A stretch of 64,000 nt of DNA from Haliotis rufescens (lineage: Eukaryota). The stretch's first letter is position 1, and each line of letters opens with the position of its first letter. Shown one piece after another: positions 4,343 through 59,660 of the stretch. The stretch is taken from positions 32,674,001 through 32,738,000 of the forward strand of contig NW_025964112.1 of NCBI RefSeq assembly GCF_023055435.1, read 5' to 3'. The translations under genes were made by a program, and so were the position numbers. The notes beneath the pieces were generated by a model. It searched no databases. It was not told the DNA's origin and saw only the letters and a list, made by a program, of their open reading frames with translations.

Positions 4343-5011
4343 AGACAAGGGTTCGATTCCCGACTCACCCACTGACCCACTCTTATCAAAACCACTATGC
4401 GGTTCACTGTTAACACGATCATATTTTACGGTCAGTTGATTGAACTGCGCACTTAACTTTCCGCATCACAGTGAATTCTAATGGGGGGTTTTCAAGCCAA
4501 AGTTTACGGTAAAAACAAATGATATTATCCCGCAATGTATAACGATTTGGTTCTGCAACTGTTGGCGATAAACGTTTGCATAAATAATCAGGTAAGATAG
4601 GGTTCAACATTTTGGAGGTTGGCAATGTAAAGCGATTTCTTCTTTCACTCGAGGAAGTTGGATTAGTTCATAGGAAATTCTATCATAACGTGTTCCAGGA
4701 ACTGCACCATATACTCCATTCCAGGATGACACATTGTTGTTTTGTACAGTTATACAAATATAACTACAATATTGGAATAGTTAGGATAAACACCATATAC
4801 ATAGTTTCCAGGGTTATCTTTGGGATGCGATTTTTAAAGGAATTTAAAGGATATAAATTCAGGAATATACAGTTGAATATTCCTGGAGGGGACAGGACAT
4901 ACGGCATGTCCAGCTCCTATGATGACAGTGCTTTAAGCTGGAACGAAATGATCTAGACATACCAGCCCCCTCACTTCAGAATGTGAAATGGAGGTTCCAA
5001 AACAACCATAT

Positions 5012-6791
5012 TTAAGCAAAGCGTACATTAAGTGACACCACTACAATTATCAAACACACAACACTGCAAACAAGGGCGATTTTCTTCCAGTGTTCTTTCA
5101 AATACTCCCGCCAGTCAGGCTCCTGATGACAGCAATGCAACAACACGCGGTGAAACATATACTCATTGTCCATATCATTGGGGAGAATGTGTCCATTTTT
5201 GATAAACAGCCTTAATGTTTGTTTGACGGTAGATTCCAAGTCGCTTGGAAGGTCGATGCCTACTTCAGAATCTTTTCCGACTGACGCAATGATAAGAATT
5301 GATGAAGGCAAACCTGAGGGTGAAATGTGACAGAATCTATATTTGTGATCAACTTATTTAACAGTTTGTATTTCTCTCGAATAGGAGGCAAAATGTTTGA
5401 AATAACGCAATCAGCACTCAACATGAACACTTTAAGGCTGTTTTGAAATAAATATGTCAACTCTTTCTGAATATATTTAGTTCTCCTTCTCCATATATCA
5501 ATACTGGATTATTCTCCTTGTTATAGGTGCACGCCTACATACAACCGATATATTTGAATATAATCACCTACCCCGTAATGTGTCAACAATGAGTTCCTCT
5601 TCATCTTTAATGCGAGATGAAACTTGATATATGACGAGGTGGGGGAAATCCTTTTTTAACTTCGATCCCTTCGCTCTGTATCGCATCACATTTTGGAAGA
5701 ATTCGTCTTCTAGACTTTCGGCGTTATTGCTTCTCGGGATGATGATAGTATTTGCTCTCAGTATGTTCTCTACAAGATAAATGCTGAATGTTACATTGGC
5801 CTCTCGGTATAGGAGGCATGTGTTGCAACTATAGGATGTTGTTACGGCAAAAAGGTGACATATTTAAAAATGATTACTATCATTCAATATTACTCTGATT
5901 AGGAAGGAAATTGCTTGGCATCAACCCTTTAATGACAAATGTGTGGTGACTCGAACACCAGGACAATAATTCCCACACACAGAAAGTAAAACTACTTTGG
6001 TTTAGGTGAAGACTCGTGTGTGATAATGAACATCTAGTAGAAACTGTGGTTGATATCATAGCCATATCGCTCATGTACTGTTATCGCAGAGTTTGCTAAG
6101 AGGGCGGTGAATTTTAGTGCCTCTTGGCCACTGAAAATGTCAAACTATAGACACAGTAAATTTGGATCTATTTGTATAAATATTATCAGATGTTCAAATG
6201 GCGGACAACTAGCCTTTTTTTTAGCTTATTACACCTGCACGTTTTGCAATCCTGTGGTGACAAGTTCACCAGATTAGCTTAAAGAAGTGAAAAAGACCGA
6301 TTTATTCTTTAGAACTCCAAGAGAAAAAAATATGTTTTTATATTTTATATATCTTTTGTTTATCCACATCTAAGAAACTAGATGGACGGAAAAATGTTGT
6401 TACTTAAATATTAGAAAAAAAAGCTTCTTGAAAACATGAGATGTTTTAACACATTCTAGCGTCACTATACAAATAGTATTGCCAATAAGCTCCATACGTC
6501 TACGGATCTCACTCTAACATGAAACAAGTCTTATAAGTTGTTTATATGAAGACATCGGACAACCTCCATAACCATGTTTAAAAAAATACCTTTTCTTAAA
6601 TCGTGCATCCAATGGGGCCATTATCATACTTTGTTTTTGTGCTTAGTAATTTGCAAGTGCTCAAAGGAAGCAGAGGGTTTACCTTCCACTATACTAAACA
6701 CTCGAACAATGTATTCCAACTTACCCATGTCACTCCTTCCATGCATTCCCATGCTCTTGTATGTTACTGGACTGGCTGCAACCTTGGACAT
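5012..6791 (-). CDS. GIMAP/AIG1-like degenerate GTPase with C-terminal TM anchor, paralogue 1 (188 aa)
   Basis: Exons 6791-6725 (ATG; 67 nt), 5769-5572 (198 nt) and 5313-5012 (302 nt). Introns are GT-AG, phase 1/1, and the frame is open: MSKVAASPVTYKSMGMHGRSDM/ENILRANTIIIPRSNNAESLEDEFFQNVMRYRAKGSKLKKDFPHLVIYQVSSRIKDEEELIVDTLR/GLPSSILIIASVGKD...WKKIALVCSVVCLIIVVVSLNVRFA. The gene model is well supported by four copies; the family call is inference from motif resemblance. Confidence 0.75.
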
Positions 6792-7532
6792 CCTGGAAAC
6801 ATATTAGTCAGCGGATGTTAATGAAAGTCTGTTTGTTTAATTACATGTGCGTAAGAGTTTTACACCATCATCGAAACCACAAATCGGAACAGGGTAATGA
6901 AAATATAAATCGTAATTGAAAAGTGTAGTCAGGGATGAAGCACGTCTTAAGACTTTGTAAGCAAATAACCTTAACGTCGAACTGACTCTCATCCACAAGC
7001 TAAGAAAACCGACCTACATACGCCTACAAAATAGCAAACCTGTTGACTATCTTGAATATGATACCTTTATGAATATGTCATCATTACAGAATTGGCCTTA
7101 TTGTCTTCCACGAACAATTGCATCCATGTAATCAAAGAACACATTACGTCATTTAGCAAAAAGAGATATTGAAAAAAGAGTGCAGGTAAAGGTCCCCTTA
7201 CAAGACTCTCAATCGATGACAAATGCATCTGATATATTTAATGTACATGACAAATTGATATAGCAGGTCGAGTTTAGGGATGTATATACATACATATACG
7301 GGGCTCGTCTGTTTGTATATATATATACATGTATATACACAGATACATCTTTTGTATGATCCCTGGCTCGGTTGTCAATGTTAAGACAATCTTATGAATA
7401 TAGATTCTATGAAAGGACAGTTTTAATGAAGATCAGGTTTGTCTAAACACAAACTCCATCTGACCAACGGCTGTGCTCTGCAATCATAACAGTAGATTTA
7501 GTGAACATAATAAAACGTGTTTAGTGAGAAAA

Positions 7533-7736
7533 ACTTACCTGTTTACAGCTAGCCCTGTTGAAACGTTCTTCTCTTCAGATCGTCAAATAAATACTGTGCA
7601 GGAGCTGGTATAATATTGAGTTATCAGCCTCGGTTTCATGCATGCAATGTCTGCCTGTTAGACAGCAATTGGACCGTGACACAGAGCGCTCAACTCACTT
7701 CCCATAGCAGAGGATATTCGACAGCTACAAGTAAGT
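7533..7736. promoter_or_regulatory. Putative bidirectional promoter with two outward-facing non-coding first exons (copy 1)
   Basis: Minus-strand donor CAG|GTAAGT (acttac, 7533-7538) and plus-strand donor CAA|GTAAGT (7731-7736). The block is conserved at 19545-19729 and 59661-59862. Confidence 0.55.
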
Positions 7737-8204
7737 GGTATTAACGTTATTTTCATCACGAGTGCTTTAATAATGATATCAACAGCAGAAGTACTATATG
7801 TCTTTATTCATAATACTGAGAGGCCATAGGCCTATAGTACATGTTATCTAGTAAAGGGTGTATATACATTTATTAGGTAACACATGTGGAACTCCTTAGT
7901 TTCCTAGTATTTTTCGTTACTAGCAGCAGCAGAAGTAAGGTCCTATTATTTACAGAAGCTGGCAGCCTTCTAAGAAAAAAAGTATAACCTATTATCTTTA
8001 AAAGTGGACACCTAACTCTATTTGAAGTTACTAGTTTTAAGATGTGCACATTTTAGGTCAGTGTAATGATTTTTTATACAGAAAACAAAAAAACAAGGTA
8101 TGCAGAGAAGTTATAATCAATAATTATTTTGTCTTCAATGATGAATTTAACTATTTTGACCATACATTGTTTTTTTATTATTTGTATTTGATGTCATCTT
8201 CGTC

Positions 8205-11900: not shown

Positions 11901-13278
11901 GCTATGGCTAATGCTACCTGCATCATGGGAGCAGAATTGACAAAATAAATGTAGCGTCACTTTGTTATTTTCTAAGCTGGACAACTCGAATGTTCTCAAA
12001 TTGACTTGGTTTTTTTTATTTGATGTTTTATGGAGACTACATTATTACTTTTCATGCTTAAGTCCGCTTCAGACTGCCCTCATTGGACTTGGTTTCTGAA
12101 CTTGAAGTTTTTGTGCAATGTTTCTCTGGTAAAATTGTCGATAAGACTCATTGTGACGGAAATACTTCAAACCACTTGTAGGTAGATCATTAGTTACTCG
12201 ACATTCCAATAGCAACAGTCTTTAAAACATTCTATCTTGTTTTAACGGACATATAGCATTTCCGACAGTACTTTAGCGTCCCATTGGGCTTGCCATTTTT
12301 GAGCGATGTCGGATTTGATTTTGCTCTTTTTCTAGAGCCAGCTTCGCCAGTAGGTCTGTGAATCTTAACACCTATACTTTAATCTGGATGAAATTATATT
12401 TATACAGCTTCTAATAAAAGATCCCTACATTGATGATCATATTAAACATTAATACACACAATACGTTCAAATCAATTATTATTTCTGTAATTAGGGTTCT
12501 AAAACTATGAATATCAGTAGGAATCTATTTAGCAAAATTCCACACATTTGAAAGACATTCCACAGCTGACATAATCCAATATTTTTTTCAATACCCATGA
12601 CCTGTAAAACAGACAGCTGCACTGTTGGAATATTAGAGCATCCTCGGCAGTCAGTTGAAAGGGGTCTTGGTCCATCCCCACTGATTTCATCCATAAGCCC
12701 TTACATTTGACAAGCACGTTCTGAGCAGAATAGGATATAGAAGAAAACATGAAAGTATGAAAGTTCAGGAAAAGAGGAACGAAATAATTTTACATGGAAA
12801 CTCATAACGATGCGAATGTTCCGAATTTCCGACTGTTTTCCAAACATTGCTATCATTATACTATACTGACACTAGATTCCATGTTCTTGATCACATTTAT
12901 CTTATATTTTCTTACAGATTCCTAAACTGAATGTTCTGTAACGAGATTAAGGTTCCAACCTAAATAAACGCATGTTGTTAGGCTACTTGTAACATTGTGA
13001 GTGTATCACGCCGTATGTAGTCAGATATATGTAATGTAACACATGAACTTTCCCAACTATCCAGTGGACAAAAGCACGATGAACGATCCAAACCCGTCGG
13101 GGCGCGATGACACACAATCATCCACTCTTTTCGAAACCAACCACAGGAACCGCATGTGTCGAGTCTTACGACCAGCATAGGGTTTTCTCTTTGCAAAGTA
13201 CTCTTTTCGAAACCACTACAACCGCATTTGTCGTGTTTTACGACCAGCAATGGGTCCCGTCTCTGCAACGACCCCAGC

Positions 13279-13578
13279 CGCATTTGTCGAGTCTTACGAC
13301 CAGAATGGATACTCACGTCGTTACAACCGGAGACGCATTTGTCGAGTCTTACGACCAGAATGGATACTCACGTCGTTACAACCGGAGACGCATTTGTCGA
13401 GTCTTACGACCAGAATGGATACTCACGTCGTTACAACCGGAGACGCATTTGTCGAGTCTTACGACCAGAATGGATACTCACGTCGTTACAACCGGAGACG
13501 CATTTGTCGAGTCTTACGACCAGAATGGATACTCACGTCGTTACAACCGGAGACGCATTTGTCGAGTCTTAAGACCAG
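13279..13578. repeat. 55-bp minisatellite, about 5.4 near-perfect copies, with degenerate copies upstream (~13150, ~13222)
   Basis: Unit cgcatttgtcgagtcttacgaccagaatggatactcacgtcgttacaaccggaga starts at 13279, 13334, 13389, 13444, 13499 and 13554. Confidence 0.97.
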
Positions 13579-13704
13579 CATAGGGTACTCTTTTGAGTTA
13601 CCAGTTGCAACGGCTGGAACTGTATTCGTCCACAAAACACCAACCAATAGTTAGTGAGCTGAATTTCGAGCTCAGACATACATGGGGTGAGCAGAGTTCC
13701 GAAA

Positions 13705-14790
13705 CATATGTGATGTGATCGGAGTTTCCAGCTCATACATACGTGAAGTGATCTGAGTTTCCAGCTCATACATACATACATGTAGTGAGCGGAGTTTCCA
13801 GCTCATACATACATACATACATGTAGTGATCGGAGTTTCCAGCTCATACATACGTGTAGTGATCGGAGTTTCCAGCTCATACATACGTGAAGTGATCTGA
13901 GTTTCCAGCTCATACATACATACATGTAGTGATCGGAGTTTCCAGCTCATACATACATGTAGTGATCGGAGTTTCCAGCTCATACATACATGTAGTGATC
14001 GGAGTTTCCAGCTCATACATACATGTAGTGAGCGGAGTTTCCAGCTCATACATACATGTAGTGAGCGGAGTTTCCAGCTCATACATACATGTAGTGAGCG
14101 GAGTTTCCAGCTCATACATACAAACATGTAGTGATCGGAGTTTCCAGCTCATACATACATGTAGCGATCGGAGTTTCCAGCTCATACATACATGTAGTGA
14201 GCGGAGTTTCCAGCTCATACATACATGTAGTGATCGGAGTTTCCAGCTCATACATACATGTAGTGAGCGGAGTTTCCAGCTCATACATACATGTAGTGAG
14301 CGGAGTTTCCAGCTCATACATACATACATGTAGTGAGCGGAGTTTCCAGCTCATACATACATGTAGTGATCGGAGTTTCCAGGTTCGACATTGTACATGT
14401 GGTGGGCGGTGTGTGTGTGTGTGTTAGTGTGTGTGTTAGTGTTAGTGTGTTTGTGTGTGATTGTGTGATCNNNNNNNNNNNNNNNNNNNNNNNNNNNNNN
14501 NNNNNNNNNNNNNNNNNNNNNNNNNNNNNNNNNNNNNNNNNNNNNNNNNNNNNNNNNNNNNNNNNNNNNNNNNNNNNNNNNNNNNNNNNNNNNNNNNNNN
14601 NNNNNNNNNNNNNNNNNNNNNNNNNNNNNNNNNNNNNNNNNNNNNNNNNNNNNNNNNNNNNNNNNNNNNNNNNNNNNNNNNNNNNNNNNNACATACATTT
14701 AGTGAGCGGAGTTTGCAGGTCATATATACATGTAGTGATCGGAGCTTCCAGCCCATACATACATACATTTAGTGATCGGAGTTTCCAGTT
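13705..14790. repeat. 33-bp minisatellite (with +4 cata variants), interrupted by assembly gaps
   Basis: Unit catacatgtagtga(t/g)cggagtttccagctcata, about 20 copies before the gap; it produces the repetitive YELETP/SWKLRS ORFs. Confidence 0.97.
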
Positions 14791-15822: not shown

Positions 15823-16963
15823 CAACAACAAAACAATTAGCAAACCTGGTTACAGAATGCGAATTGGCAAATAACATAATGTATAAACACCATTAGGAAG
15901 TATTAACATGAAGACCTAGTTGACTTGCGGATTTCACTTTCTCACAATGCGACTTTTCGGTAAAGAGGCTGGTTGCTTTATCCACCTGCTTGATAAAGGT
16001 AATAGCATATGCACTGTAACCTCGCACTGTAAGCAAAAAGTTGAAATCCATGTGAACTCTGTCTTCATCGTTACTACAGCTTCTGAAATGCCACTTAAAT
16101 ATACATACTAATGTTAGAAACATTACCGCTGAAATAGTTTACAATTTCTAAGTATATCCATGAGTAAAATTGTACATGCATTGTATTCCTAACAATATCA
16201 TAATGAGCACAGTGAAGAAGTAATGAAGTGCACTTTCGGTGGTGCAGGAAGGAGATGGTGCAACATTTTGGAAACGGTTGGCAATTTAAATCGACTCCCT
16301 CAAACGAATTTCATTTAAGGAAATTGGTTTAGTTTTCAAAACCACTTTGCGGTTCACTGTTAACACGATCAGATTTTACAGTCAGTTGACTGAATTGGGC
16401 ACTTAAGTTTCCGCATCACTGTGAATTCTAATGGATTTTTGTCTTTTCAAGACATAGTTTAAGGTAAGAAACTAATATCATCCAGCAATGTATAACGATT
16501 TGGTTCTGCGACTGTTGGCGATAAAAGTTTGCATAAATAATCGGGTAATATAGGCTTCAACATTTTGGAGGTTGGCAATATAAAGCGATTTCTTCTCTCA
16601 CTTGAGGAAGTTGGATTAGTTCATAGTAAATTCTATCATAACGTGTTCCAGGAACTGCACCATATACTCTTCCGTAACGCTTCTACATTTTCCAGGATGA
16701 CACATTGTTGTTTTGTACAGTTATACAAATATAACTACAGTATTCGAATAGTAGGGTAAACACCATATACATAGTTTCCAGGGTTATCTTTGGGAGGCGA
16801 TTGTTACAAAGGAATTTAAAGGATATAAATTCAGGAATTTACAGTTGAATATTCCTGGAGGGGACAGGACATACGGAATGTGCTTTAAGCTGGAACGAAA
16901 TGATCTAGAAATACCAGCCCCCTCACTTCAGAATGTGAAATGGAGGTTCCAAAACAACCATAT

Positions 16964-18609
16964 TTAAGCAAAGCGTACAATAAGTGACACCACTACAATT
17001 ATCAAACACACAACAATGCAAACAAGGGGGATTATCTTCCAGTGTTCTTTAAAATACTCCCGCCAGTCAGGCTCCTGATGACAGCAATGCAACAACACGC
17101 GGTGAAACATATATTCATTGTCCATATCATTGGGGAGAATGTGTCCATTTTTGATGAACAGTCTTAATTTTGGTTTGACGGTAGATTCCAAGTCGCTTGG
17201 AAGGTCGATGCCTACTTCAGAATCTTTTCCGACTGATGCAATGATAAGAATTGCTGAAGGCAAACCTGAGGGAGAAATATAACAGAATCTATATTTGTGA
17301 TCTACTTTATAAACAGTTTGTAGTTCTCTCGAATAGAAGTCAAAATGTTTGTAATAACGCAAGAACAAGGACAATGTTTTGAAATAAATATGTCAACTCT
17401 TTCTGAAAATCTGTACCCCGTAATGTGTCAACAATGAGTTCCTCTTCATCTTTAATACGTGATGAAGCTTGATATATGACGAGGAAGGGGAAATCCTCTT
17501 TTAACTTTGATCCCATCGCTCTGTATCGTATCACATTTTGGACGAATTCATCTTCTAGATGTCCGGCGTTACTGCTTCTCGGGATGATGATAGTATTTGT
17601 TCTCAGTTTGTTCTCTGCAAGATAAATGCTGAATGTTACATTGGCCTCTCGTTATAGGAGGCATGTGTTGCAACTATAGGATGCTGTTACAGCAAAAGGG
17701 TGACATTATTTCATTAATTCCTATCATTCTCTATTACTCTGGGAAGGGTATTGCTTAGCATCAACCTTTGATGAAAAATGTGTGGTGACTCGACACCAGG
17801 ACAATACTTCCCGAGCACAGGAAGTAAAACTACTTGCATCTGTCAGAAGCTGTGGCTGCAATCAAAGACGTATTGTTCTTTTACTATCATCACAGAGTTA
17901 GCTTAGAGGGCAGGCGTGTCTAGTGCCTCTTAAGGCCACTGAAAACGTCAAATAATAAAGATACAGACTATGAGTTAATTTTAATTCATTGGTATGAAAA
18001 GTATCAGACACGTTGAAATGGCGGATATCTAGCCTATTTCCGTATTATCTCTATACGTTTGAACTTCTAAGGTGACAAATTCACAAGGCCGATTTATTCT
18101 TTCAAACTTCAAGAGAGAAAAAATATATATTGTAAATCCGAGACAGAAGGTGAATTTGCCCACACTTTTCTTGTTGTTGTTTTTATCTACATCTAAGAAA
18201 GTCAGTTTGGATAGAAAAATTGCTCTTGTTGAAATATTAGAAAAAACACTTTCCATAAACATCTAAAATCAGCTGTTTTGACACACTTTAGCCACACTAT
18301 GCAAAAATCATTGTTATATGTCCGACAGATCTCACAGTAAAATGAACCAGGTCCTATAGTCGTTTATATGAATACATCTGATAACTTCCTTAACGATGTT
18401 TAAAAATCGATCATTTCCTAAATCGGGCATGAAGTGAATCAAACATTATCATGGTTTGTTCCTGTACTTAATCATTTATCTGTACTCAATGGGAGTAACG
18501 TGTTTAGGTTCGACTATACTAAACACACGTATTCCAACTTACCCAAGTCGCTCCTTCCATGCGTCCCCATGCTCCTGTATGTGGCTGGGCTGGCTGCAAC
18601 CTTGGACAT
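16964..18609 (-). CDS. GIMAP/AIG1-like degenerate GTPase with C-terminal TM anchor, paralogue 2 (188 aa)
   Basis: Exons 18609-18543, 17614-17417 and 17265-16964 (67/198/302 nt), open frame: MSKVAASPATYRSMGTHGRSDL/ENKLRTNTIIIPRSSNAGHLEDEFVQNVIRYRAMGSKLKEDFPFLVIYQASSRIKDEEELIVDTLR/GLPSAILIIASVGKD...IIVVVSLIVRFA. The middle-exon donor is a weaker GTACAG. Confidence 0.75.
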
Positions 18610-19544
18610 ACTGGCAACATATTTTTAAGGACGTTGATGTTGAAGAAGTCCTGTTTTGTGTACATACATTTGTGTCAAACGTTACACAATGTTATTGAAT
18701 ATACAGATCGGAATAGGTTATTGCCCTGATAATGGAAACATAAATGACAATTGAAAAGTGTAGTCAGGTGATACATGTACATTCGTTTGCTGCTCAGCAC
18801 ATATTGAAGCATGTATTATTGCTTTGTAAGTACATAACAGTAATGTCAACACGACAGTACGACAGTTCTCAAAAACCTATCTACATATTCCCAGCAAACC
18901 TGTTGAATATCTTTGTGTGTTGAATATAAGATCTATGTCAATATTAATACATCATTACATAATTGACCTTATTGTCTTCAAGAACATTTACATTTATGTT
19001 AGGTCCAAGTTGGATCAATCACAGAAAACATAACCTCATTAAGCCCCATGCCAAAAGACGTTGAAAAATGACTTCAGGTAAAGGTTCCCACACAAGCCTA
19101 CTAAATATTATCGATGAAATATGCATCTAAAGTGCATACCACATAGGTATGATTATAGTAGATTGAGTTCGTTGACGTATATACACACGTTNNNNNNNNN
19201 NNNNNNNNNNNNNNNNNNNNNNNNNNNNNNNNNNNNNNNNNNNNNNNNNNNNNNNNNNNNNNNNNNNNNNNNNNNNNNNNNNNNNNNNNNNNNNNNNNNN
19301 NNNNNNNNNNNNNNNNNNNNNNNNNNNNNNNNNNNNNNNNNNNNNNNNNNNNNNNNNNNNNNNNNNNNNNNACACNNNNNNNNNNNNNNNNNNNNNNNNN
19401 NNNNNNNNNNNNNNNNNNNNNNNNNNNNNNNNNNNNNNNNNNNNNNNNNNNNNNNNNNNNNNNNNNNNNNNNNNNNNNNNNNNNNNNNNNNNNNNNNNNN
19501 NNNNNNNNCAAGGTTTCATCTTACAATGTTTCATGTTCATGAGA

Positions 19545-19729
19545 ACTAACCTGTTTGCAGCTACCCTTGGTGAAACGTCCGCCTCCCCAGTTCGTTAAAT
19601 ATAAACTGCGCATGAGCTGGTATATATGAATTTTGTTATCGGCCTCGTTTTCATGCATGTGACATGTACACTGGGAACGGGGGATAGAGCACACACATCT
19701 CCCACAGCAGAGAACAGCTATAAGTAAGT
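19545..19729. promoter_or_regulatory. Putative bidirectional promoter/first exons (copy 2); candidate 5' end of the IFI44-like gene
   Basis: Minus donor CAG|GTTAGT (19545-19550), plus donor TAA|GTAAGT (19724-19729); homologous to the 7.5-7.7 and 59.7-59.9 kb blocks. Confidence 0.55.
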
Positions 19730-20054
19730 AGTAGTAGTAACATTATTTCCACGAATGCTATTATTACGAGATACAGCAAGCAGAAATAATATTGATATAA
19801 CTAAGGTCGTACTATATAGAAAAACTGTCAGCCTTTGACTAAAAAAGTATTAACTATTTTCTATACAAATGGGCATCTTCAAATTATGAAGTTACCAGTA
19901 TTTAGATGTGCACTTTTCAGGTCAGGGTTATGGTATGTTACACAGAAAACAATAACAAGTCAACAGGGAAATGTTTTTTTCAATCATGAATTTAACTTAT
20001 TTTCCATATTTGTTCGATTATATATATTTGATGTCATCCTCCTCTCGTATTGTA

Positions 20055-20355
20055 CCCGGACAGCGGGAGGTCGGTGGTTCGATCTTCTGGTCCCGCCATA
20101 CTCAAACACGTTAAAAATGGTACTTGCTGTTACGCTGGCTTCAACCGCCATCAATGAGATATAGCAAGGACTGGCCGCATCGAGTCGGGATAATGTGTCT
20201 GAGTCGGAGAGCCATGTTAAAATGTGGCATGGTATCTCAGTGGGATAGCACTATTTAAACCGGCATAAGTCCGGATTAATACAAGAAGACACAAACACAC
20301 GTGGCTTAATGTCGCATTGTTAGTGAAACAATCTTGGATGCGACCTTAAACCCAT
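20055..20355 (+). mobile_element. SINE family A copy
   Basis: gcgggaggtcggtggttcgatc...cgccatactcaaacacgttaaaaatggtacttgctgttacgctgg...catgttaaaatgtggcatggtatctcagtggg. Confidence 0.8.
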
Positions 20356-21844
20356 TTGACCTCACCCCACCTCATCCCATCTCTCATGTTGTATGGAACT
20401 CTGGGGATTTCATACCTCACCTAACTTTGTAAATGTTCATGACATACCTTTTTGGGAAATTCTACACGTTGTCGAAAGCCCACCGAAGTTGCACAATCCG
20501 CGAGATCAACAAAAACTGTATAAAGTAAATCAATATAGTAAAAATGTAAAATACCAGAGAACGTTGCTTCGAGATAGTACCCTTTTTATATAAAATTCGT
20601 ATATTGTATCGATATGTATCAGCAGAAGAGGGAAAGAATGTTGAAAAACACTTATTTTGATATATGTTTTGGGATTAATGTTGATTAATCCTGACATGGG
20701 TGATGTTGACATTGAATTTTCGCAATTTGAATTAATGTGCATTGATGAATATGACAATGTTGTCGATATTCCCCGCCTTTTTGGTATGCTGTGTGTTAAG
20801 TAATTTACATTTACGTTTACGCATTAAGTTTATTTCCATGTTATTGGTATGCTCCCGTTGTCACAGAGTATGTTTCAATAGAAGTTGTTTTTTTTGTGTA
20901 ATGTGAGATAGCTGTGAAGCTTAAAGTCAATAATGAATTGAAGTGAAGTTGAGGCAATGTAGGTTTCATTGTCTGCCAGGGGTAGACGGCATAGTTTTGC
21001 TGTTTAAAGCGTGGTTGAACTCGTGTATTGTAAGGGCTTTGTGGTGAGGTATGTTGCCTTGAGGTGGCCGTGCCATGGTGCGGCGAGTATTTTGCGCAGA
21101 ACAGAACAGAACTTTATCGCTTTTCGAGGCCCGGTATAGCGGCATATGAAGTAGTTTTTGTTTGTTTGAAACTGTAAACAATTCTTCAAAATCTGTTGTT
21201 CGTGGCTCAATTGAAGGTGCGGTCTCCTCCAATCCCACCATATGTTTAGAAATACAAAACATTTTATCGTCACTAATGTATTTAATATCACTGTGCTGAA
21301 GCCAATCCTTATAAACCACATATGAATAGATATTGTCAACGGGCTTGTGTTGACGGGGAATTAGCTCTTGGGGGAATAAAGGACAAAATCGACATCACTA
21401 TCCCGGAACGCTTTATGCATAACATGTAAACAATAAACAACAATTGCACAATGAGCGGAATACCTGCTCTGACAACACAAACACAGCAATGAGCGGACCT
21501 TCCAGCTCAGGCAATACAAGAGATGAGCGGAGCTCCAGCTCACCTCAGGGCGTTTCCTACGAGCAGCACATCCTGCTCGAGGTCGTCCCTATGCCAGCAC
21601 TCGGAATACCAAGCCTGACTTACACCGTAGTAACTGTGTAATGGTAACACATATATAGTAATGAACAACAATGGACAGACAAAGAGACAATGACATTGCT
21701 TTGGACATTGGACATATGGACGTGATGAACCAACACAGTTCATGGGATGATCAATTAGGGCAATAAATGTCATACTATAAAAAGCAGTAGTTAAAGGGAA
21801 GTGATTTGGTAGTCCAGGCTGACTGACAGTCAATATACAATGAA

Positions 21845-24800
21845 ATGTTGGTGAGGATTAACAACGGGGATGAGCGCCTAAAACGTAATGACAATTAAGT
21901 TGTGGAGACATGGCTACAGGGTAATTTGCCCTTGGAGTCAAATGTACTGCAGACAATGGTAGTCATAAATCAGTCGCTATGACAACTTCCCTCCGTTCCG
22001 TGAAGCTTGGACCCCAAGCTTACATGAGTCCAAATTGATATGTGTGACACGTTTTCACCAACGAAAACAACAGTGCAAAATGTTAACATAATCAGTTAGA
22101 TGAGTTCAGGATATTGTTGAAATACGTGTGCACAAATACCTATCCAATGACGGTATGAAAGTTATCATCTAGCCAGTTTGATTTAGTGCCAGTTTGAAAA
22201 CTAACCAAGTATTGAACACACAACGATATAACAAATATAACATTTGTTACATCAACCAAGTATTCTTTGCAATGTGCAATTTCACTACGAGGTAATACAA
22301 CTTTGCACAGATTCAATAAATATATCACCAAAGGTTCTTTGAATTCAGGAGTCTGGCTTGGAGGTGCGACTCTGTACCGAATAATGATAATGAGTAATGT
22401 CATAAAAAGCACAAATGAAACATCTCAACAAATATTTTGCATAAAGAAATTTGAAACCAGGAGTCTAACTTTACCGCGCGACTCAAACGGTACTTGTGGG
22501 TACGTTTGCCCTTTTAAGTACAATGGGTGCTCTTCCCGTGTCTTTAACGGAGCTTGCCCATATGTTATGGGTGCTATGCCCAAGGAAAATAATAATCCTT
22601 AATTCCGACATCAAAATTCTGAAATGCTGAATACCGCTGTGCAGTTAATTAGTTAATACTGACATACAATAAACATATGTGTGGGGTTGGCTTACCCAAG
22701 AATATCCCTAATCTGAATTCAAAGTCCTAGACAATACATTCAATTTTGTACCAAATTGTGCACATTAATAACATGTAACAAATGACAAATTTTGTCGTTT
22801 AGATTTTTTTAAATTACGAGTCTAGCTTAAAGGTGTAACTCGATAACCCTACAGCTTAGGTTTGTCTGGGCCCTAGTTGTATCTATATATCTGGCGTGGC
22901 CTGGGGACATTTCAAAGATTCCCTACACAATAATTTCAAAGATCTAGCTTGACTAAAGATGTGATTTGGAGTATAGTGCACATATGCAAAACTGAATTTT
23001 GGAAAGACTCCTTTTGGCATAAATATACTGGCTTTGATCAAACATACCTGGTTGCACTTATCAACAGTCACACAATATATATCCTGGAATGCGTCCATGT
23101 AAGTAAACACAAATTAGTAAGTCCCAATGAGATATCTTGTACACAGTGTCCATCTTGCAGGTGCCCGTGAGGCGGTTTCTGTATTGTGCAGGGTCTGCAT
23201 GAAGATGGCTGTGGTCGGATCTCTGTGGTATACGCGTGTATACTTCTTTTCTTAGGTCATGTGCAGGAATGACATCTTGAAGGGGAAGACTTAGCAGTGT
23301 TGCTAAGATATTCGAGCAGGGAAGGTTTGGGATCGGAGAACTTGTTCTTGATCAGAGAGGTTCTTGTTCTTTCTTCAATCTTGTTACAGGCCGTTTCTTC
23401 GTTCTTGGTGATTGGCCTTCAGGAAGGTAGTATATATCCTTTTAATAAAAGACTGTCACTTTCTACAGTTTTGTGAACCATATGCCATGCTGCAAAGAGC
23501 TACAGGAAAGGACAGACTAAGAAGTCTGTCATAACCGATAGCTCAACCAAATTAACAACGCGTTGGTCTGACATTCATTAATGAATAATTTGCATATTTG
23601 CGTATATGCAAGGGGCCGACGTATGGTTCTCAGTAGGAAGTGACAACTTGGAGACGATGGCTTGCGGTGTATACAGTTTTACTTTATACATGTAGATATA
23701 AACATACAAAGGCACTGTGTGCCAGATCAGCACATGGTGGTAGTGGTTGTTGTCAAGGTGCCCCGGAGCACCCAGCCTAACCCTAGCTAGGCTAAGGGTA
23801 AGACCTTTCTTTTTCTCCTCACTTACTTACTTACTTACTTTGGAGATTTAACGTGCGCTTTCCAACTGATGCGTATTTCGCACACGGGCCCGGCCAGGCC
23901 ATTTAATGTGTTTCCGAAAGGGGCGAAAGTGGTCTGTGCAACCCAAGAGGGGGGTTTTAGGGGTTGCTTATATAGAATTTGGGAATTTTGAGATTTGGAA
24001 TAGATGCCGATGGGATTGGGGAGGAGAACTAAGGGAGCTGGGTATGGTGGATGTTTGTTTGTTTATGTGATTTTGATTTGGTAGGTTATTGTGTTTTTAG
24101 ATGCGTTTTATTAGTTCCGTTTTTATTAAGAATACGCCTAAGGCCTTGAAGTTTTCTAGTTTATTTTGTGGGTTTAGTATTGCTTCTAGAGTTAGAGCCT
24201 TGTTTAGATTGAGGGTGGTTTGTAATGCGGTTCGATGTGTTAGGTAGTGTGTGCAGTGGATGAGTGCGTGTTCTGGGGTTTCTGGTTGTTTGCAGTGTGG
24301 GCAGTTACCTGTAGTGTGTTTTTAAAAAAAAATTAGGTGGTTATTTAGGTTGGTGTGTCCTGTTTGGAGTTAAGTGATTACTCTGTCGATTTTTTTGGAT
24401 GGATGGAGAATTTTTGGTTTGGTTAGTGGTTTGCTGAGCACTTTTTTTATTTGGCTATTTGAGTTTAGATATAGGTTATGCCATTTTTTGTGATTTTTTG
24501 CTTGTTTACACTTTTAATTTCTGATTTTGAGATGGGTAAGTTTAAGCTTATTTCTGGGATTTTGAGGGATAGTTTAGCTGCTTTATCGGCTAAGGGTAAG
24601 ACCTTTCTTTTCTCCCCTCTGGACCAAGGCTTATATAGCCAAGGTCACCTGACATTTAGTAAGTAATAAATATAAATGTAAACAGTAAATCATCAGTGAC
24701 ATACTTGCACATCTTGTTCAGGATCGTAGACGGTCGATGTACACAAAAATGGGGATTAACAAATAGGATTAGCATCTTATAAATAACAGCAATTAAGTGT

Positions 24801-24895
24801 TTCAAGGCATAAAGATGTCATGGCTCCAGGGTGATGAGCCTTTGCAATTAAATGTACTGCAGACAATGGTAGTCATATATCAGTCGCTATGACTA
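21845..24895 (-). mobile_element. Probable internally deleted LTR retrotransposon remnant (Gypsy-like)
   Basis: Diverged direct repeats at ~21850-21983 and ~24750-24893 share aaatgtactgcagacaatggtagtcata(a/t)atcagtcgctatgac. Decayed coding-like interior with an integrase C-terminal-like LQHGIW...VEK relic near 23.5 kb. Boundaries approximate. Confidence 0.45.
23819..24590 (-). mobile_element. 5'-truncated I-group LINE (RNase H end plus CCHC knuckle) with (AAGT)n tail and ~28-bp target-site duplication
   Basis: Minus strand reads ADKAAKLSLKIPE...LQTGHTNLNNHL...CPHCKQPETPEHALIHC. Tail (ttac)n at ~23820-23840. Flanked by ggctaagggtaagacctttctttt(t)ctcc at 23790 and 24588. Confidence 0.85.
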
Positions 24896-25627
24896 TATGA
24901 TAAATCTTATTTATATAATTTTTCAAAACAATTATTTCACTTGCCTCTGCATTTAAACAGGCTATTTCTGTTTCTTTAAATAGGGTTTAATGGTACCGCA
25001 CGACAGAATTTAGACGAAAAGTACATCAGATGAAATTGTTTTATATTAATAAAGCGTCTGGATTGTACAGAATGAATGCCGCTTCATATAATTACACTGT
25101 TCTGAATAAAATTCTTTTCGAGCAAAACGATAGCTTTAGGTTGTATACGGTATACAAGTGCCAAATATATCATATACAGCAATTCGACATATCTGTGGGT
25201 GTGGTGGTGTGTATCGGATATGTTATATACATGTATATCATTGTGAAATACGGGGAAGTGTGTACATCACACATAAAACATACATCACTCAGAATGAAAG
25301 GTTGTGTGTGTGCGTGTGTGTGTGCGTGCATCGTACTTAATATAAACATAAGAAACATTCAGAATGAAAGACGTGTGTGTATATATCGGATATATTATAA
25401 ACATCGCACAGGATGGAAAGCGACGGAGAGTGTTCAACGATAGACAACGACAGAGGTTTATATCGGATGTATTATATTATACATACTTCAGAAGGCTGTA
25501 GATGTCAGCATAGAAACATGCTGAGAAGTAACAAGATGGATGTTGACCATTTTGTATCGAGATTAGATATTTTTCTCAGCTACAGCTATAAAACAAGATA
25601 TCATTTTTTTAAATTAAAACCGAGAGC

Positions 25628-28200
25628 CTGTAGTGAGTTTGGCGGGACTGGTGCTGTTGTGACGTGGATTGGACTGGTACTGTTGGGACTGGTACTGTAG
25701 TGAGTTGGATGGGACTGGTACTGTAGTGAGTTTGGCGGGACTGGTGCTGTTGTGACGTGGATTGGACTGGTACTGTTGGGACTGGTACTGTAGTGAGTTG
25801 GATGGGACTGGTACTGTAGTGAGTTTGGCGGGACTGGTGCTGTTGTGACGTGGATTGGACTGGTACTGTTGGGACTGGTACTGTAGTGAGTTCGATGGGA
25901 CTGGTACTGTAGTGAGTTGGGTGGGACTGGTACTGTAGTGACGTGGATGGGACTGGTACTGTAGTGACGTGGATGGGACTGGTACTGTAGTGACGTGGAT
26001 GGGACTGGTACTGTAGTGAGTTGGATGTGGCTGGTACTGTAGAGAGTTGGATGGGACTGGTACTGTAGTGACGTGGATGGGATTGGTACTGTAGTGAGTT
26101 GGATGGGACTGGTACTGTAGTGAGTTGGATGGTACTTGTACTGTAGTGAGTTGGATAGGACTGGTACTGTAGTGAGTTGGCTGGGACTGGTACTGTAGTG
26201 AGTTGGATGGGACTGGTACTGTAGTGACGTGGATGGGACTGGTACTGTAGTGACGTGGATGGGACTGGTACTGTAGTGAGTTGGATAGGACTGGTGCTGT
26301 AGTGAGTTGGATAGGACTGGTACTGTAGTGAGTTGGGTGGGACTGGTACTGTAGTGAGTTGGGTTGGACTGGTACTGTAGTGAGTTGGAAGGGACTGGTG
26401 CTGTAGTGACGTGGATGGAACTGGTACTGTAGTGACGTGGATTGGACTGGTACTGTAGTGACGTGGATGGGACTGGTACTGTAGTGACGTGGGTGGGACT
26501 GGTACTGTAGTGAGTTGGGTGGGCCTGGTACTGTAGTGAGTTGGATAGGACTGGTACTGTAGTGAGTTGGATAGGACTGGTACTGTAGTGAGTTGGCTGG
26601 GACTGGTACTGTAGTGAGTTGGATGGGACTGGTACTGTAGTGACGTGGATGGGACTGGTACTGTAGTGAGTTGGCTGGGACTGGTACTGTAGTGAGTTGG
26701 ATAGGACTGGTACTGTAGTGAGTTGGCTGGGACTGGTACTGTAGTGAGTTGGATGGGACTGGTACTGTAGTGAGTTGGATGGGACTTGTACTGTAGTGAG
26801 TTGGGTGGGACTTGTACTGTAGTGAGTTGGATGGGACTTGTACTGTAGTGAGTTGGGTGGGACTTGTACTGTAGTGACGTGGATGGGACTGGTACTGTAG
26901 TGACGTGGATGGGACTGGTACTGTAGTGACGTGGATGGGACTGGTACTGTAGTGAGTTGGATAGGACTGGTACTGTAGTGAGTTGGGTGGGACTGGTACT
27001 GTAGTGAGTTGGATAGGACTGGTACTGTAGTGAGTTGGCTGGGACTGGTACTGTAGTGACGTGGATGGGACTGGTACTGTAGTGACGTGGATGGGACTGG
27101 TACTGTAGTGAGATGGGTGGGACTGGTACTGTAGTGAGTTGGGTGGGACTGGTACTGTAGTGAGTTGGAAGGGACTGGTGCTGTAGTGACGTGGATGGAA
27201 CTGGTACTGTAGTGACGTGGATGGGACTGGTACTGTAGTGACGTGGATGGGACTGGTACTGTAGTGAGTTGGGTGGGACTTGTACTGTAGTGAGTTGGAT
27301 AGGACTGGTACTGTAGTGAGTTGGATAGGACTGGTACTCTAGTGAGTTGACTGGGACTGGTACTGTAGTGAGTTGGATGGGACTGGTACTGTAGTGACGT
27401 GGATGGGACTGGTACTGTAGTGACGTGGATGGGACTGGTACTGTAGTGAGTTGGATAGGACTGGTGCTGTAGTGAGTTGGATAGGACTGGTACTGTAGTG
27501 AGTTGGGTGGGACTGGTACTGTAGTGAGTTGGATGGGACTGGTACTGTAGTGACGTGGATGAGACTGGTACTGTAGTGAGTTGGGTGGGACTGGTACTGT
27601 AGTGAGTTGGGTTGGACTGGTACTGTAGTGAGTTGGAAGGGACTGGTGCTGTAGTGACGTGGATGGAACTGGTACTGTAGTGACGTGGATTGGACTGGTA
27701 CTGTAGTGACGTGGATGGGACTGGTACTGTAGTGACGTGGGTGGGACTGGTACTGTAGTGAGTTGGGTGGGCCTGGTACTGTAGTGAGTTGGATAGGACT
27801 GGTACTGTAGTGAGTTGGATAGGACTGGTACTGTAGTGAGTTGGCTGGGACTGGTACTGTAGTGAGTTGGATGGGACTGGTACTGTAGTGAGTTGGATGG
27901 GACTGGTACTGTAGTGACGTGGATGGGACTGGTGCTGTAGTGACGTGGATGGTACTTGTACTGTAGTGAGTTGGATGGGACTGGTACTGTAGTGAGTTAG
28001 ATGGGACTGGTACTGTAGTGAGTTGGAAGGGACTGGTGCTGTAGTGACGTGGATGGAACTGGTACTGTAGTGACGTGGATTGGACTGGTACTGTAGTGAC
28101 GTGGATGGGACTTGTGCTGTAGTGACGTGGGTGGGACTGGTACTGTAGTGAGTTGGATGGGACTTGTGCTGTAGTGAGTTGGATTAAACTCGTTCTGTAG
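25628..28200. repeat. 26-bp satellite array (~100 units)
   Basis: Unit gggactggtactgtagtga(gt/cg)tggat; decays toward ~28450. Confidence 0.98.
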
Positions 28201-28576
28201 TGATTTGGATGTAAAGGGTTTTGAAATGAGTTGTGTGTGACTTGTACTGTAATGAGTCGAGTTGAACGCGCTGTTGTAAGAGAGATGTAACGCGTGGCGT
28301 AGCAAGACAGATTTTACACTCGATCTTCTCAAGTATTCGAGTCCTACTGTAGTAAAATAGATGTACTACGTGTCGTTGTAGGACAGGTGTGAAACCTGCT
28401 TTAGTGCCATGGATGTGACATGGGTTATATTGAGGTTGGAGTGACATGTGTGACTTCTGGAAAGCTTCAGATGTGACACATTGACTCATTATCATTGCTA
28501 CTGTATCATTATGATCGTTGACCTTTGAAAGAATAATTCGGTCATGATCAGATATACTGTTTTTCTTCCAGTAAAC

Positions 28577-29832
28577 ATGGGACCGTGGCAGACTAAGGAA
28601 AGGGTTCCCACTCCTGTAAGTAGCTGGCGAGTTTATCTTACATCTTCATTGGTAAAGCGTTCTGCCTCTTTGTAACATGTACTCCAGAACTTCAGAACTC
28701 ACTCTATCATAGATAGGACACTGACATCACTACAAATTTGTTGTTTTTGTAATTAAAGAAAACAATAATAACATTCAGTAATGTTGTCATGTTTCAGCCA
28801 CCGACTGAGAAATGGGGAGCAGATGTGGCTTTGTCCTGGACACCAGAAGTATGTTTTGCGAATTAGAGGTACAGAGAATATACTGTTGTCAAGACATATG
28901 TCAATCATCAGTTAGTGATCATCATATGGTTGTTGTGAACGAAAAACCAGTTGATGCTTGTGGAAATATTCAATCAAATGTCTAGCTGTTCGTCCACGTT
29001 CGTTCGACTGTATTGTCTGCTATCCCCAGGGCCTATGTGTTTGGCTTATCCCAGGAAGTGTTTCATTTCAGGGAGAAGATGACTTTCGCCGTCGCATAGC
29101 CGAAGTCACAACCAGAGACGGGCTTGTGGTGATTCTGTTTGGTCAGACTGGATTTGGTAAATCGTCTTTTGGCAATGGAATTCGAACTTCCATCAGACGG
29201 GACAGGAAAGTCTCCAATTATTTTCCTGTGGGAATTAACACACATGGCAGCTACACTAAAGCTGTGAGTTGTTGAATGTTATAATCAAAATGTCAAAGTT
29301 CCGACTTCAATTTTTCGTTTTCTTTTAATATTTCCAGTCACTGGTAGCAGAAATTCAGCATAAAAATGTGTAATAGGGAGGTTTCTTGACAGAATGAAGC
29401 CAACGGATAACAACGATATCCGTTTGGGTCATATGCGGATAGAGATGCAAATATCAAAGGTCAAGTAGGAACTACTTTCAGTGTTTACAAACAAACATGG
29501 CGTCGCCCTTGTCATTCGGCGATCGAGTCAGAATTAACCGATGGACACGTCACTTACCTTCTGATATTTATAAAAGCGCACATTCCATGAAAAGTTGCAA
29601 TGTTTCGGTAATGTTTGTGAGAGTTGGGAAGTGTATTCGAGCATAGAATTGAAGAATGATATTATAAGTTACAAGTTATCACGCTTGTGTGTTTGGGGAT
29701 TGTAAATATCCTGCACTAGGATTAAACACTATGTATATAGCTAGGCAAGGTTCGCAAAATACAACGTACAATCCTAATACAATAATTCCACTATCGTCAA
29801 ACACACTCGCGTGATAACCCAACCCACCCACC

Positions 29833-29901
<69 letters not shown>

Positions 29902-31632
29902 ATGAAAACTGTATATTAACATATGTGTATGTATTGCAGCTGAACAGTGACGATTACTGCCGTAGATATTGTCAAGAAAAGTGCACTTGCCAGCCGTATT
30001 TTTGGGTAATTGACATGCCAGGATTATTCAACAGTGACGCGATCACAGACGAGAGTATTGAGAAGATTATCACAGGACAGGTTCCTTTCTATGCAGAAGT
30101 AAGTACTTTGGGAACGTTTGTCACCTACATAAAGAGTGAGTTGATGGGGATTAACATCAGAGCAACAATGATATGCCAACATAGACGCTTGTAAACAACT
30201 ATTCATCTCGTCAGTATGCCACACAATCAACCAGGTCATCGTGTTACACGCGTGGACAGATGTAGTTTTACAACATAACCACAAAACATTGTTTGTCAGT
30301 GATCTAAACTGTACATGTTGTATGCTTAAGGGGATCTGTGACCACATATGAAGAATCTTAAAAATGTTCTAATGGCAAAATATATCTATTTATAGAGGTA
30401 TATTTTCATTCTGTTGGCTGGGAAAGTGTGAAGAATGTCTATTGTTTTCGTGTCCAGGTGAAACCAACGCTTGAGGCTATGGATAGTTCACAGATCCTCC
30501 CGCCAGAGGAGAGGGTCAAGGCGTCATGCGTAGTTCTTGTCCTTAAAGCAGGAGTTGCTGTAGGCGATGATGTAAAGCGACAGATTGGTGTGCTGAGAAC
30601 GCTACATTCACGAGGGGGTAACCATACCTTATATATCTACAACAATATTCAAGTACACACTTTATGCTTACAAATTTAACAAATTTTGTTTCAATCATCT
30701 CGATTGACAAGTGTTTTTTTCATCATCACATACACTATTTATATTATAGTTTACATTCATTTAGAATCTCTGTAAATTAGTATACTGACTATTGCGTTTG
30801 TACTGTTACATTTGCAACTGAATTTTTGTTCTACTGATATAATGGTAACTGTTGTAGTGTGGCGCATACACGTATATTAGTTGTTATAATATCGTATCGT
30901 CAACGTATCATTCTATTCACTGAAATGCTCATGATATGTTTTACTTCATTTAAAATACTTTTGTTTACTTAAAACAACATATACTCAGTCAAAATGTGTT
31001 TGTAGTACTGTTGTGCGGTGTCAAACAGGAAACAAACAGACTACTGGTGGGGCAGAACATGCTTACCCTTTACGAGAAAACTTTTCATTGATGCATTCAT
31101 ATAATTTTACGACTTTTTTGCCTTCACGCCCGATGAAACCTGATTCGGCGGATTATCGATACAAGTTATTTTCTGGTGTTGATGATTTTGGGATAGTTCA
31201 TTTCATAATGTTTTAGGTAATACAATATGAAGCAAAACAATAAGTTGCATGTTCAAAACGGCGCTGATGTTTTAAGATGAAGTATTTACATAACAACGTT
31301 TCTTTTCAGTTCTGTCAGTCCATGTGATCCTGACACACATCGATGCGGTGGAACCACTGTTGAAGGATTCCGACAATATTCCATACGTGTTTAACTCGGA
31401 GGAGGTTCGGGCTGCGGTGAGGTTTGCTTCTACGGAGACAGGGTTACCTCAAACATGTATCAGCGTGGTGAAGAACTACACAGTTGAAAACGCCACCAAC
31501 ACCAACAGCAGTATCCTGTACCTACATGCCCTGGAGAACATCCTGCTCGCTGCTAGAGACACACTTGAACGGGATGAGACGAAAAACAGAATGCGAACAA
31601 CGTTATACACAAAGAACACAGAACCACGATGA
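28577..31632 (+). CDS. IFI44L: Interferon-induced protein 44-like (IFI44/IFI44L family) P-loop GTPase, 307 aa, no TLDc domain
   Basis: Six GT-AG coding exons: 28577-28615, 28798-28848, 29072-29263, 29940-30098, 30458-30617 and 31310-31632, totalling 924 nt in frame. Motifs: G1 GQTGFGKSSF, G2 SYT, G3 DMPGL followed by IEKIITGQVP, G4 ILTHID, plus IFI44 hallmarks VKNY and LHALENIL. The symbol is family-level, not orthology. Confidence 0.88.
29833..29900. repeat. (CT)n microsatellite in an IFI44-like intron
   Basis: Seen directly. Confidence 0.97.
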
Positions 31633-59292: not shown

Positions 59293-59660
59293 CCTGGTAA
59301 TTGAGGCATATTGTTAACGAGGTTGGTGTTGGAGAAATTCCGTTTTGTGTAAATACATTTTCGTAAAACATTTTACAAAATCATCGAATATGCAACTCGG
59401 AACATAGTTTGATGTTCAGCATATATTATGACATTGTAAAATAAACAACAGTAACGCGAACCCGATGGGAGGTCAACTGTCTTAAACAATCTGAAAAAAA
59501 CCTAGGTTCATACTCCTAGAAAATAGTAAACCTGTTGAATAGTTTTGTGTGATGAACATGATCAGGCTTGACTAAACACAAACTCCATCTGACAAACGGC
59601 TGCGCTTTGCAATCTGAACGGTAGATGTAGGAAACATATTAAAACATGTCTAGTATGAAA

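Follow-up and report, generated by a model that had tools for sequence, protein, structure and literature searches.

The question raised by this locus is whether two genes standing head-to-head in the red abalone Haliotis rufescens, one encoding an IFI44-like GTPase and the other a small membrane-anchored protein, form a co-regulated pair whose products work together, or are simply neighbours. The window (i.e., the whole stretch of DNA that was analysed, 64,000 nucleotides, G000:C334:32674001-32738000) is part of a 1.33-Gb genome. A sequence-only reading of it had proposed that a GIMAP-like pseudo-GTPase gene and an IFI44-like GTPase gene share a bidirectional promoter of about 200 bp and were amplified as a cassette, with the anchored and catalytically dead partner recruiting or gating the GTPase. 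IFI44 and IFI44L are classic virus-induced genes, and to our knowledge their molecular mechanism and partners are poorly understood. In molluscs the IFI44 family is expanded and responds to herpesvirus infection (PMC4198667). We found that the head-to-head pair was duplicated as a unit and that its members lie side by side in each of four Haliotis species; binding of the two proteins is predicted, and the GIMAP label of the small one is wrong or at least unproven.

Using self-comparison and exon searches, we were able to identify two complete units (B and C) in the region, plus two partial copies (A and D) of the gene for the small protein (188 amino acids, aa). In both B and C the small gene is on the minus strand and the GTPase gene on the plus strand, which is the head-to-head orientation that had been claimed. 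Unit B contains, in order, the small gene, a conserved block, about 0.6 kb of sequence, a transposable element (TE) insertion at 21.3-24.9 kb, a 26-bp minisatellite and the IFI44-like gene; unit C is laid out likewise, except that it has no TE and its minisatellite is longer. Copy A is a small gene with its block and no IFI44-like gene after it, and copy D comprises small-gene exons 2-3, with the first exon broken and the GTPase partner absent. The second IFI44-like gene (unit C, LOC124152177) is found 4-8 kb past the right window edge (window-equivalent 68100-71790), about 40 kb downstream of that of unit B, with block, minisatellite and GTPase gene in matching layout. Units B and C are thus the head-to-head pair duplicated as a unit, and the small gene was additionally copied alone, beyond the two full units. 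The claim of amplification as a cassette stands for B and C as full units and does not extend to A and D, which are without a GTPase partner; only one IFI44-like gene (that of unit B) is inside the window. Both families (this subtype) are restricted to a region of about 70 kb, with no further members found in the genome.

The small gene of unit B corresponds to NCBI LOC124152181 (P0001, 188 aa, 'uncharacterized'), which has three coding exons and was matched at 100% identity in a search with the last exon. We spliced exons in scripts, both for checking the gene models and for computing substitution rates; exons 18609-18543, 17614-17417 and 17265-16964, joined at canonical splice sites, give the exact P0001 translation. 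The ATG exon (18543-18610, minus strand) has its ATG at 18609-18607, and an AG acceptor, preceded by a pyrimidine-rich stretch, ends one base upstream of it, so that the exon starts at 18610, as the sequence-only reading had it. Coding exon 2 (17417-17614, minus strand) has the donor GTACAG and the acceptor TATCTTGCAG, and coding exon 3 (16964-17265, minus strand) contains the stop and encodes a C-terminal hydrophobic tail anchor. Small gene A (LOC124152180; 5012-6791, minus strand; coding exons 5012-5313, 5572-5769 and 6725-6791) and small gene C (LOC124152178; 57571-59292, minus strand; coding exons 57571-57872, 58134-58331 and 59226-59292) likewise give the exact 188-aa translations of P0002 and P0003, respectively, from their joined exons. 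A, B and C each keep an intact 567-nt open reading frame (ORF) and intact splice sites. Pairwise among these three paralogues, the synonymous divergence (dS) is 0.11-0.19 and the ratio of nonsynonymous to synonymous divergence (dN/dS) is 0.55-0.72; the IFI44-like genes of B and C differ by a dS of 0.08, with a dN/dS of 0.53. A stretch at 17724-17861, considered as an extra GTPase-like exon, was rejected, since it does not share the frame of the ATG exon and the NCBI model lacks it.

The IFI44-like gene of unit B, reached via an H. asinina orthologue that was found with a last-exon search, is LOC124152183 (P0055, 307 aa, NCBI 'uncharacterized'), and its six exons in the window, all on the plus strand, reproduce the protein. 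The ATG exon is at 28572-28615, and the acceptor was correctly placed 5 nt before the ATG (AG at 28570-71, five bases, then ATG at 28577). It is followed by exon 2 (28798-28848), exon 3 (29072-29263), which holds the P-loop, exon 4 (29940-30098) with DMPG (G3 motif), exon 5 (30458-30617) and the last exon (31310-31632), which encodes a THID G4-like motif and residues 216-231 of the predicted interface described below, and ends with the stop. In the protein these motifs are at positions 54-62 (P-loop, GxxGxGKSS), 119-122 (DMPG) and 209-212 (THID). P0055 aligns with H. rufescens P0010, which NCBI names 'interferon-induced protein 44-like' (39% identity over 251 aa, E 5e-55), and with the fish IFI44-like protein P0019 (26% over 272 aa, E 7e-14), so the proposed IFI44-like identity is borne out. 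Its Pfam scores are below cut-off (AIG1 20.9 bits vs 27 required; MMR_HSR1 16.2 bits), and no Pfam match to TLDc was found in P0055, which has about 45 residues ahead of the G domain. The AlphaFold2 (AF2) model is of low confidence (predicted local distance difference test, pLDDT, 55.6) and matches the G domains of EF-Tu, Irga6/IIGP1 and septin, which show only a general GTPase fold. Given the alignments to named IFI44-like proteins, the motifs and the G-domain fold matches, 'IFI44-like GTPase' is a fair name; judged by its sequence, P0055 is a divergent, TLDc-less member of the IFI44-like family, in a subfamily of two genes. The family as a whole has at least 26 exon-level matches in the genome.

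We note that five of the six IFI44-like orthologues (P0055, P0053, P0052, P0007 and P0074; window 28577-28597) start with MGxxx[S/T][K/R], a sequence similar to an N-myristoylation signal such as that of Irga6. In three of them the glycine is followed by P, R or W, which is disfavoured by the strict PROSITE pattern. In three species, isoform X1 of the IFI44-like gene has 12 extra N-terminal residues, encoded directly upstream of the acceptor; since this extension would bury the glycine, alternative acceptor use could switch lipidation on or off.

The 188-aa protein is a different matter. No match to AIG1/GIMAP (PF04548) was found with either the exons or the full-length proteins P0001-P0004, at thresholds up to E 10, and no other Pfam domain was found at that level either. 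P0001 has no G1 P-loop GxxxxGK[ST] and no G3 DxxG, the nearest strings being GTHGRS and IIIPRS. A sequence profile search of the PDB gave no match, a search of the ESM Atlas gave no lead, and a comparison of the 188-aa family with the IFI44-like family by hhalign gave a probability of 0.2%. A profile search of 5.8 billion proteins returned seven Haliotis proteins only; by this measure the family is found only in Haliotis, with no detectable relatives outside abalones. Within the genus, its orthologues have long invariant stretches in four species including H. asinina. The AF2 model is reasonably confident (pLDDT 72.6); in it the N terminus is disordered, residues 20-150 form a beta-alpha-beta-alpha-beta-beta-alpha core, and a long C-terminal helix (154-187) follows, within which about 22 hydrophobic residues at the extreme C terminus form the predicted tail anchor. 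Foldseek found nothing for this model at E<=1e-3 (GIMAP4, 3lxx, was at E 0.22). In an exhaustive structural search the best Z scores were 7.8 (TIR domain of TIR-STING), 7.8 and 7.7 (LRRK2 Roc), all below 8, and GTPase, receiver (REC), flavodoxin and TIR folds tie at a level that indicates a common arrangement. We therefore describe the protein as a P-loop-less, flavodoxin-like, tail-anchored orphan with a generic alpha/beta fold, as modelled, and drop the label 'GIMAP-like' that it had been given. With motif remnants in the right order, a GTPase origin is possible, not demonstrated. The small gene was also considered as a truncated copy of its IFI44-like neighbour and rejected as unsupported, as no more than an insignificant 12-residue resemblance was found (E 0.87).

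In four Haliotis species (H. rufescens, H. asinina, H. rubra and H. cracherodii) the two genes lie next to each other; outside H. rufescens this was judged by consecutive accession numbers and shared contigs, which say nothing on orientation. In H. asinina the IFI44-like entries XP_067685798-802 are directly followed by the small protein XP_067685803 on one 59.8-Mb contig. H. rubra has three pairs with consecutive numbers (LOC124273823/LOC124273824, LOC124273034/LOC124273035 and LOC124264754/LOC124264755), each on a shared contig, and in H. cracherodii the two families are at most 10 accession numbers apart on one contig. The pairing had been put forward as previously undescribed, and we found no paper that mentions the LOC identifiers of these genes and no description of an IFI44/GIMAP pairing, or of a bidirectional pairing of IFI44, in molluscs.

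The two proteins are also predicted to bind. As the mechanism put forward by the sequence-only reading is a physical pairing, we folded P0055 with residues 1-155 of P0001, and the complex prediction passed, with a score of 0.63 (0.63, 0.63 and 0.62 in three runs) vs 0.25 for the best control. The score mark is reached by 51 of 78 solved complexes and by two of 108 mismatched pairs; among eukaryotes the corresponding counts are 39 of 65 solved pairs and two of 126 unrelated pairs. The contacts agree to at least 52% between runs, and the pLDDT of the partner is at least 78. In the predicted interface, residues 122-123 and 136-152 of the partner (the helix before the anchor) face residues 216-231 of the GTPase, just after the G4-like motif. 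Three GTPase residues in this segment, L217, Y226 and E231, are constant in partner-bearing orthologues and are replaced (Q/C, N/Q and P/A, respectively) in IFI44-like paralogues without such a neighbour. These results support, and do not show, that the 188-aa protein binds the IFI44-like GTPase. The idea of a membrane-anchored, catalytically dead partner is supported in silico as to the anchor, the missing P-loop and the binding, and is not supported as to its being a GTPase relative, as the partner is not demonstrably a G domain.

Between the two genes of unit B lies the conserved block (19545-19729), with copies beside small gene A (7532-7797) and small gene C (59655-59929). As had been read from the sequence, both strands of block B have a donor motif: the minus-strand one is CAG|GTTAGT (exon end 19551), the plus-strand one TAA|GTAAGT (candidate exon end 19723). 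A central element lies at about 19626-19660. A three-way alignment of A, B and C has both motifs in all three diverged copies, also as claimed (minus exon end 7539 and plus donor GT at 7731 in A; minus exon end 59667 and plus donor GT at 59857 in C). The two donor islands and the central element of about 30 nt are the best-conserved 16-mers of the block, against a three-way invariance of 59% overall, and they hold the longest identical runs between A and C (22 nt at the plus-donor island, 15 nt at the minus-donor island and 30 nt at the central element). In the unique sequence shared by B and C (about 0.9 kb) from the block to the ATG exon, the plus donor of the block is the only strong donor whose position is conserved in all three copies. 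No strong conserved donors were found on either side of the block, so it is not indicated as an internal exon. At the receiving ends, the minus-strand ATG acceptor is retained in A, B, C and a further copy at 48.7 kb (four of four first coding exons), and the plus-strand one (a long T/C tract followed by AG 28570-71) in both IFI44-like copies. We note that an inverted TGAAA(A)CG pair (19571-19578 on the plus strand and 19646-19653 on the minus strand, about 80 bp apart) flanks the central element and is kept in all three blocks.

Isoforms annotated at NCBI bear on whether the two ATG exons are preceded by another exon. LOC124152181 has two transcripts for one protein; for the H. asinina IFI44-like gene, one protein is listed with four transcripts, next to an extended isoform. 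The 12-residue extension of the IFI44-like isoform X1 fits an alternative acceptor, as a second CAG is found in copy C 35 nt upstream of the acceptor of the IFI44-like ATG exon. For small gene C, isoform X2 begins at Met14, a start that a CAG within its ATG exon accounts for. With alternative-acceptor isoforms at both ATG exons, both genes appear to receive an upstream exon, which fits the claim that each needs a non-coding one. For the small gene, that exon can probably be placed. Isoform X1 of H. rubra LOC124273034 (212 aa) has 25 extra N-terminal residues joined directly to the normal ATG; searching 74 kb with this extension by tblastn, the best match was block B on the minus strand (19613-19584, 8 of 10 residues identical), with a homologous match in block C (59735-59706). 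A collinear second segment runs to 19547, so that the extension overall maps to 19627-19547 on the minus strand, and its reading frame is continuous, over the predicted donor, with the base preceding the ATG. The proposed minus-strand junction 19551->18610 is in this way indirectly supported, by an isoform extension that maps to the block and ends at the predicted donor, and we consider it very probably real. As for the plus strand, the pattern of conservation leads us to lean, if only slightly, towards use of the donor at 19724 by the IFI44-like gene, and we put a promoter truly shared by both genes at even chances or a shade below.

We propose that these genes form a Haliotis-specific, divergently oriented two-gene unit, whose products are a TLDc-less, IFI44-like P-loop GTPase of 307 aa (carrying G1, G3 and G4-like motifs) and a 188-aa tail-anchored, flavodoxin-like protein. 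The non-coding leader exon of the small gene would lie in the block and be spliced from 19551 to 18610, and the best candidate for the IFI44-like leader ends at 19723, in the block too; if that leader holds, the block would be a compact bidirectional promoter. The two genes may be co-regulated, and the pair may have an immune role. The tail-anchored protein would hold or gate the GTPase at the membrane, through a predicted contact of its last amphipathic helix (136-152) with the GTPase segment 216-231 after G4. As a whole, this explanation (divergent unit, shared block promoter and anchored partner gating the GTPase) is the one that we prefer, and we rate it a little short of even. A co-duplicated, conserved companion that is predicted to bind leads to a specific hypothesis on how an IFI44-like protein could be positioned or switched at the membrane, and it would tie a lineage-restricted orphan gene to a known immune family by position and predicted binding, not by homology.

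Several observations weigh against this explanation. On the side of the block, reading the minus-donor island on the plus strand gives a good branch-point, pyrimidine tract and CAG acceptor, and reading the plus-donor island on the minus strand gives a good pyrimidine tract with a TAG acceptor; because each island also reads as an acceptor on the opposite strand, strand usage is unfixed by sequence alone and four readings are possible. Copy A retains the plus-donor island perfectly though no IFI44-like gene follows it, so the island may serve the small gene. The H. rubra extension that places the minus-strand exon has individually weak matches (E 0.16, tied with one chance match) and belongs to a Gnomon prediction, and with that exon reaching at least 19627 by its mapping, less than 100 bp is left for two non-overlapping divergent start sites. 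No canonical ISRE (interferon-stimulated response element), NF-kB, STAT, CRE (cAMP response element) or AP-1 motifs were found in the block. The acceptor readings and the island kept in copy A would also suit two neighbours without a shared promoter, where the block serves the small gene only, as its leader exon or promoter, the IFI44-like leader lies elsewhere (nearer its ATG or just right of the block), and the plus GTAAGT island is either a promoter element or a minus-strand acceptor (pyrimidine tract and AG). It would agree with this that B-C similarity extends 0.5 kb to the right of the block, and that the plus donor of B scores 2.3 vs 4.8 for a nearby non-conserved site (donor scores here and above come from a weight matrix and are a ranking aid only). 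The coding starts of unit B are 10 kb apart, which points the same way; however, most of this spacing comes from the TE insertion and the minisatellite. Further, the block donor is the best conserved one in the 0.9 kb of shared unique sequence up to the ATG exon, and right of the block no strong minus-strand donor is conserved in all three copies. We consider this account of neighbours without a shared promoter rather unlikely.

On the side of the proteins, the prediction gives a small interface, with some 20 confident contacts, and the binding test, which was calibrated mainly on microbes, is also passed by seven of 44 blindly drawn neighbour pairs. The dN/dS values of the small gene (0.55-0.72) indicate weak constraint. 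Such values would be expected if the small gene were a young, weakly constrained orphan or a decaying remnant with no functional tie to the GTPase, its adjacency coming from tandem duplication and common descent in one genus; no homologues outside Haliotis and no known domain were found, and two of the four copies (A and D) are without a GTPase partner. Against a gene of this kind stand three copies that keep ORFs and splice sites intact, the invariant stretches shared by four species including H. asinina, a confident AF2 model (pLDDT 72.6) and a complex prediction that passed against controls of at most 0.25, and we regard this account as quite improbable. The remaining alternative takes the small protein as a true AIG1/GIMAP-derived pseudo-GTPase that acts by a G-domain heterodimer with the IFI44-like GTPase, in the style of GIMAP2/GIMAP7 or of the GMS/GKS immunity-related GTPases (IRGs). 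It would explain the tail anchor (as in GIMAP1/2/3/5), the motif remnants in G-domain order (GRS 18-20, IIIPRS 31-36, GKD 101-103), the GTPase cores among the structural matches (LRRK2 Roc at Z 7.7, Rag, G-alpha, Era and Obg) and the 12-residue resemblance to the P-loop helix of the partner (E 0.87). But AIG1 does not match even at E 10, hhalign gives the IFI44-like family a probability of 0.2%, Foldseek places GIMAP4 at E 0.22, and TIR, REC and flavodoxin folds score as high as GTPases, all at Z below 8. Moreover, the predicted interface is off the nucleotide-pocket face: helix 136-152 against residues 216-231 is not a G-domain-to-G-domain dimer, so the heterodimer of IRG or GIMAP2/7 type that had been suggested finds no counterpart in the prediction. 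We hold this origin and mode of action to be highly improbable.

Seen against known systems, the abalone pair as we prefer to read it is similar in concept to the GIMAP and GMS/GKS IRG systems and a member of neither. With IFI44/IFI44L, the 307-aa protein shares an alignment over the whole G domain as well as its motifs (P-loop GxxGxGKSS, DxxG and the G4-like THxD); it differs in being short, without the N-terminal TLDc of vertebrate IFI44, in forming a two-gene subfamily about 39% identical to the nearest named paralogue, and in having a dedicated neighbouring partner gene. The small protein resembles the tail-anchored GIMAPs (GIMAP1/2/3/5) in its single-pass C-terminal anchor, and its predicted pairing with a soluble or peripheral GTPase recalls GIMAP2-GIMAP7; unlike them, it has no AIG1 signature or P-loop, the predicted contact is helix-to-loop and not a dimer across the nucleotide, and the GTPase is IFI44-like. 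The likeness to IRGs (GMS regulators and GKS effectors such as Irga6) is one of concept, in that a membrane-resident, non-catalytic partner would control a GTPase, and the model of the abalone GTPase weakly resembles Irga6/IIGP1; GMS proteins, however, are full nucleotide-binding G domains, whereas the abalone partner is not demonstrably one and is known from sequence and models. Bidirectional-promoter pairs are called to mind by the head-to-head orientation, the compact conserved block with a donor motif per strand and a central element, and a pairing kept across species and duplication; the abalone locus departs from them in a geometry that leaves less than 100 bp for both start sites and in the 10 kb between the coding starts of unit B. 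In its boldest form, the proposal would make the tail-anchored protein, possibly an eroded G-domain remnant, a dedicated membrane receptor or gate for the IFI44-like GTPase, co-transcribed with it from one bidirectional promoter and co-duplicated, and this we think unlikely. If true, the small protein would be the first defined partner of any IFI44-family protein, and the pair would be a third independent case, after IRG and GIMAP, of an immune GTPase under a membrane-bound, catalytically silent companion.

An assembly gap or masked stretch (19192-19508; N runs 19192-19371 and 19376-19508) lies between the block and the ATG exon of small gene B, inside the putative 5' intron; no reading frame crosses it. 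Its flanks are collinear with copy A (18920-19128 with 7052-7230, and 19544-19792 with 7532-7797), and order, orientation and distance are compatible. On the other side of the block, the dispersed repeat at 21333-24900 (a TE insertion) is in unit B only and absent from unit C, so the distance from block to GTPase gene is inflated in B. It has 138 scored matches on many contigs at 77-99% identity, and includes repeated terminal segments of about 300 bp. The 26-bp minisatellite of unit B (25684-28257, plus strand; about 100 copies according to Tandem Repeats Finder) has a self-BLAST match to that of unit C (60560-64000, plus strand), which continues past the window edge to about 67.85 kb and is followed by the IFI44-like gene C. 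It is G-rich on the plus strand, with a GC skew of up to +0.63. The minisatellite would sit in the putative first intron of the IFI44-like gene, G-rich on the non-template strand; it is about 7 kb in unit C, and its length differs about threefold between the units.

The copies do not all group in the same way. When regions 4383-7797, 16333-19792 and 57078-59921 are compared, the coding sequence pairs A with B (dS 0.11) and the block pairs A with C (81% vs 70% identity), a mosaic of the kind that gene conversion between units, or unequal crossing-over, would leave. In the place downstream of block A at which a GTPase gene would be expected, there are an unrelated minisatellite (13223-14412) and N runs (about 14.4-15.07 kb). 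Copy D has exons 2-3 at 43554-44429 (minus strand), and in the broken first exon nearby (44920-44973) the ATG and the donor region are deleted. A spare, intact small-gene ATG exon is found at 48626-48715 (minus strand), 3.7 kb upstream of D, 96% identical to that of B at the protein level, and is possibly the functional first coding exon of D. The H. cracherodii protein P0005 shares the distinctive C terminus of D, which suggests that D may be a gene even now. The interval from copy D to copy C also has a 245-aa ORF at 46753-47487 (minus strand), which looks like a reverse-transcriptase fragment and has no Pfam match, and a DDE_3 transposase fragment at 51501-52058 (minus strand; Pfam E 1.1e-14).

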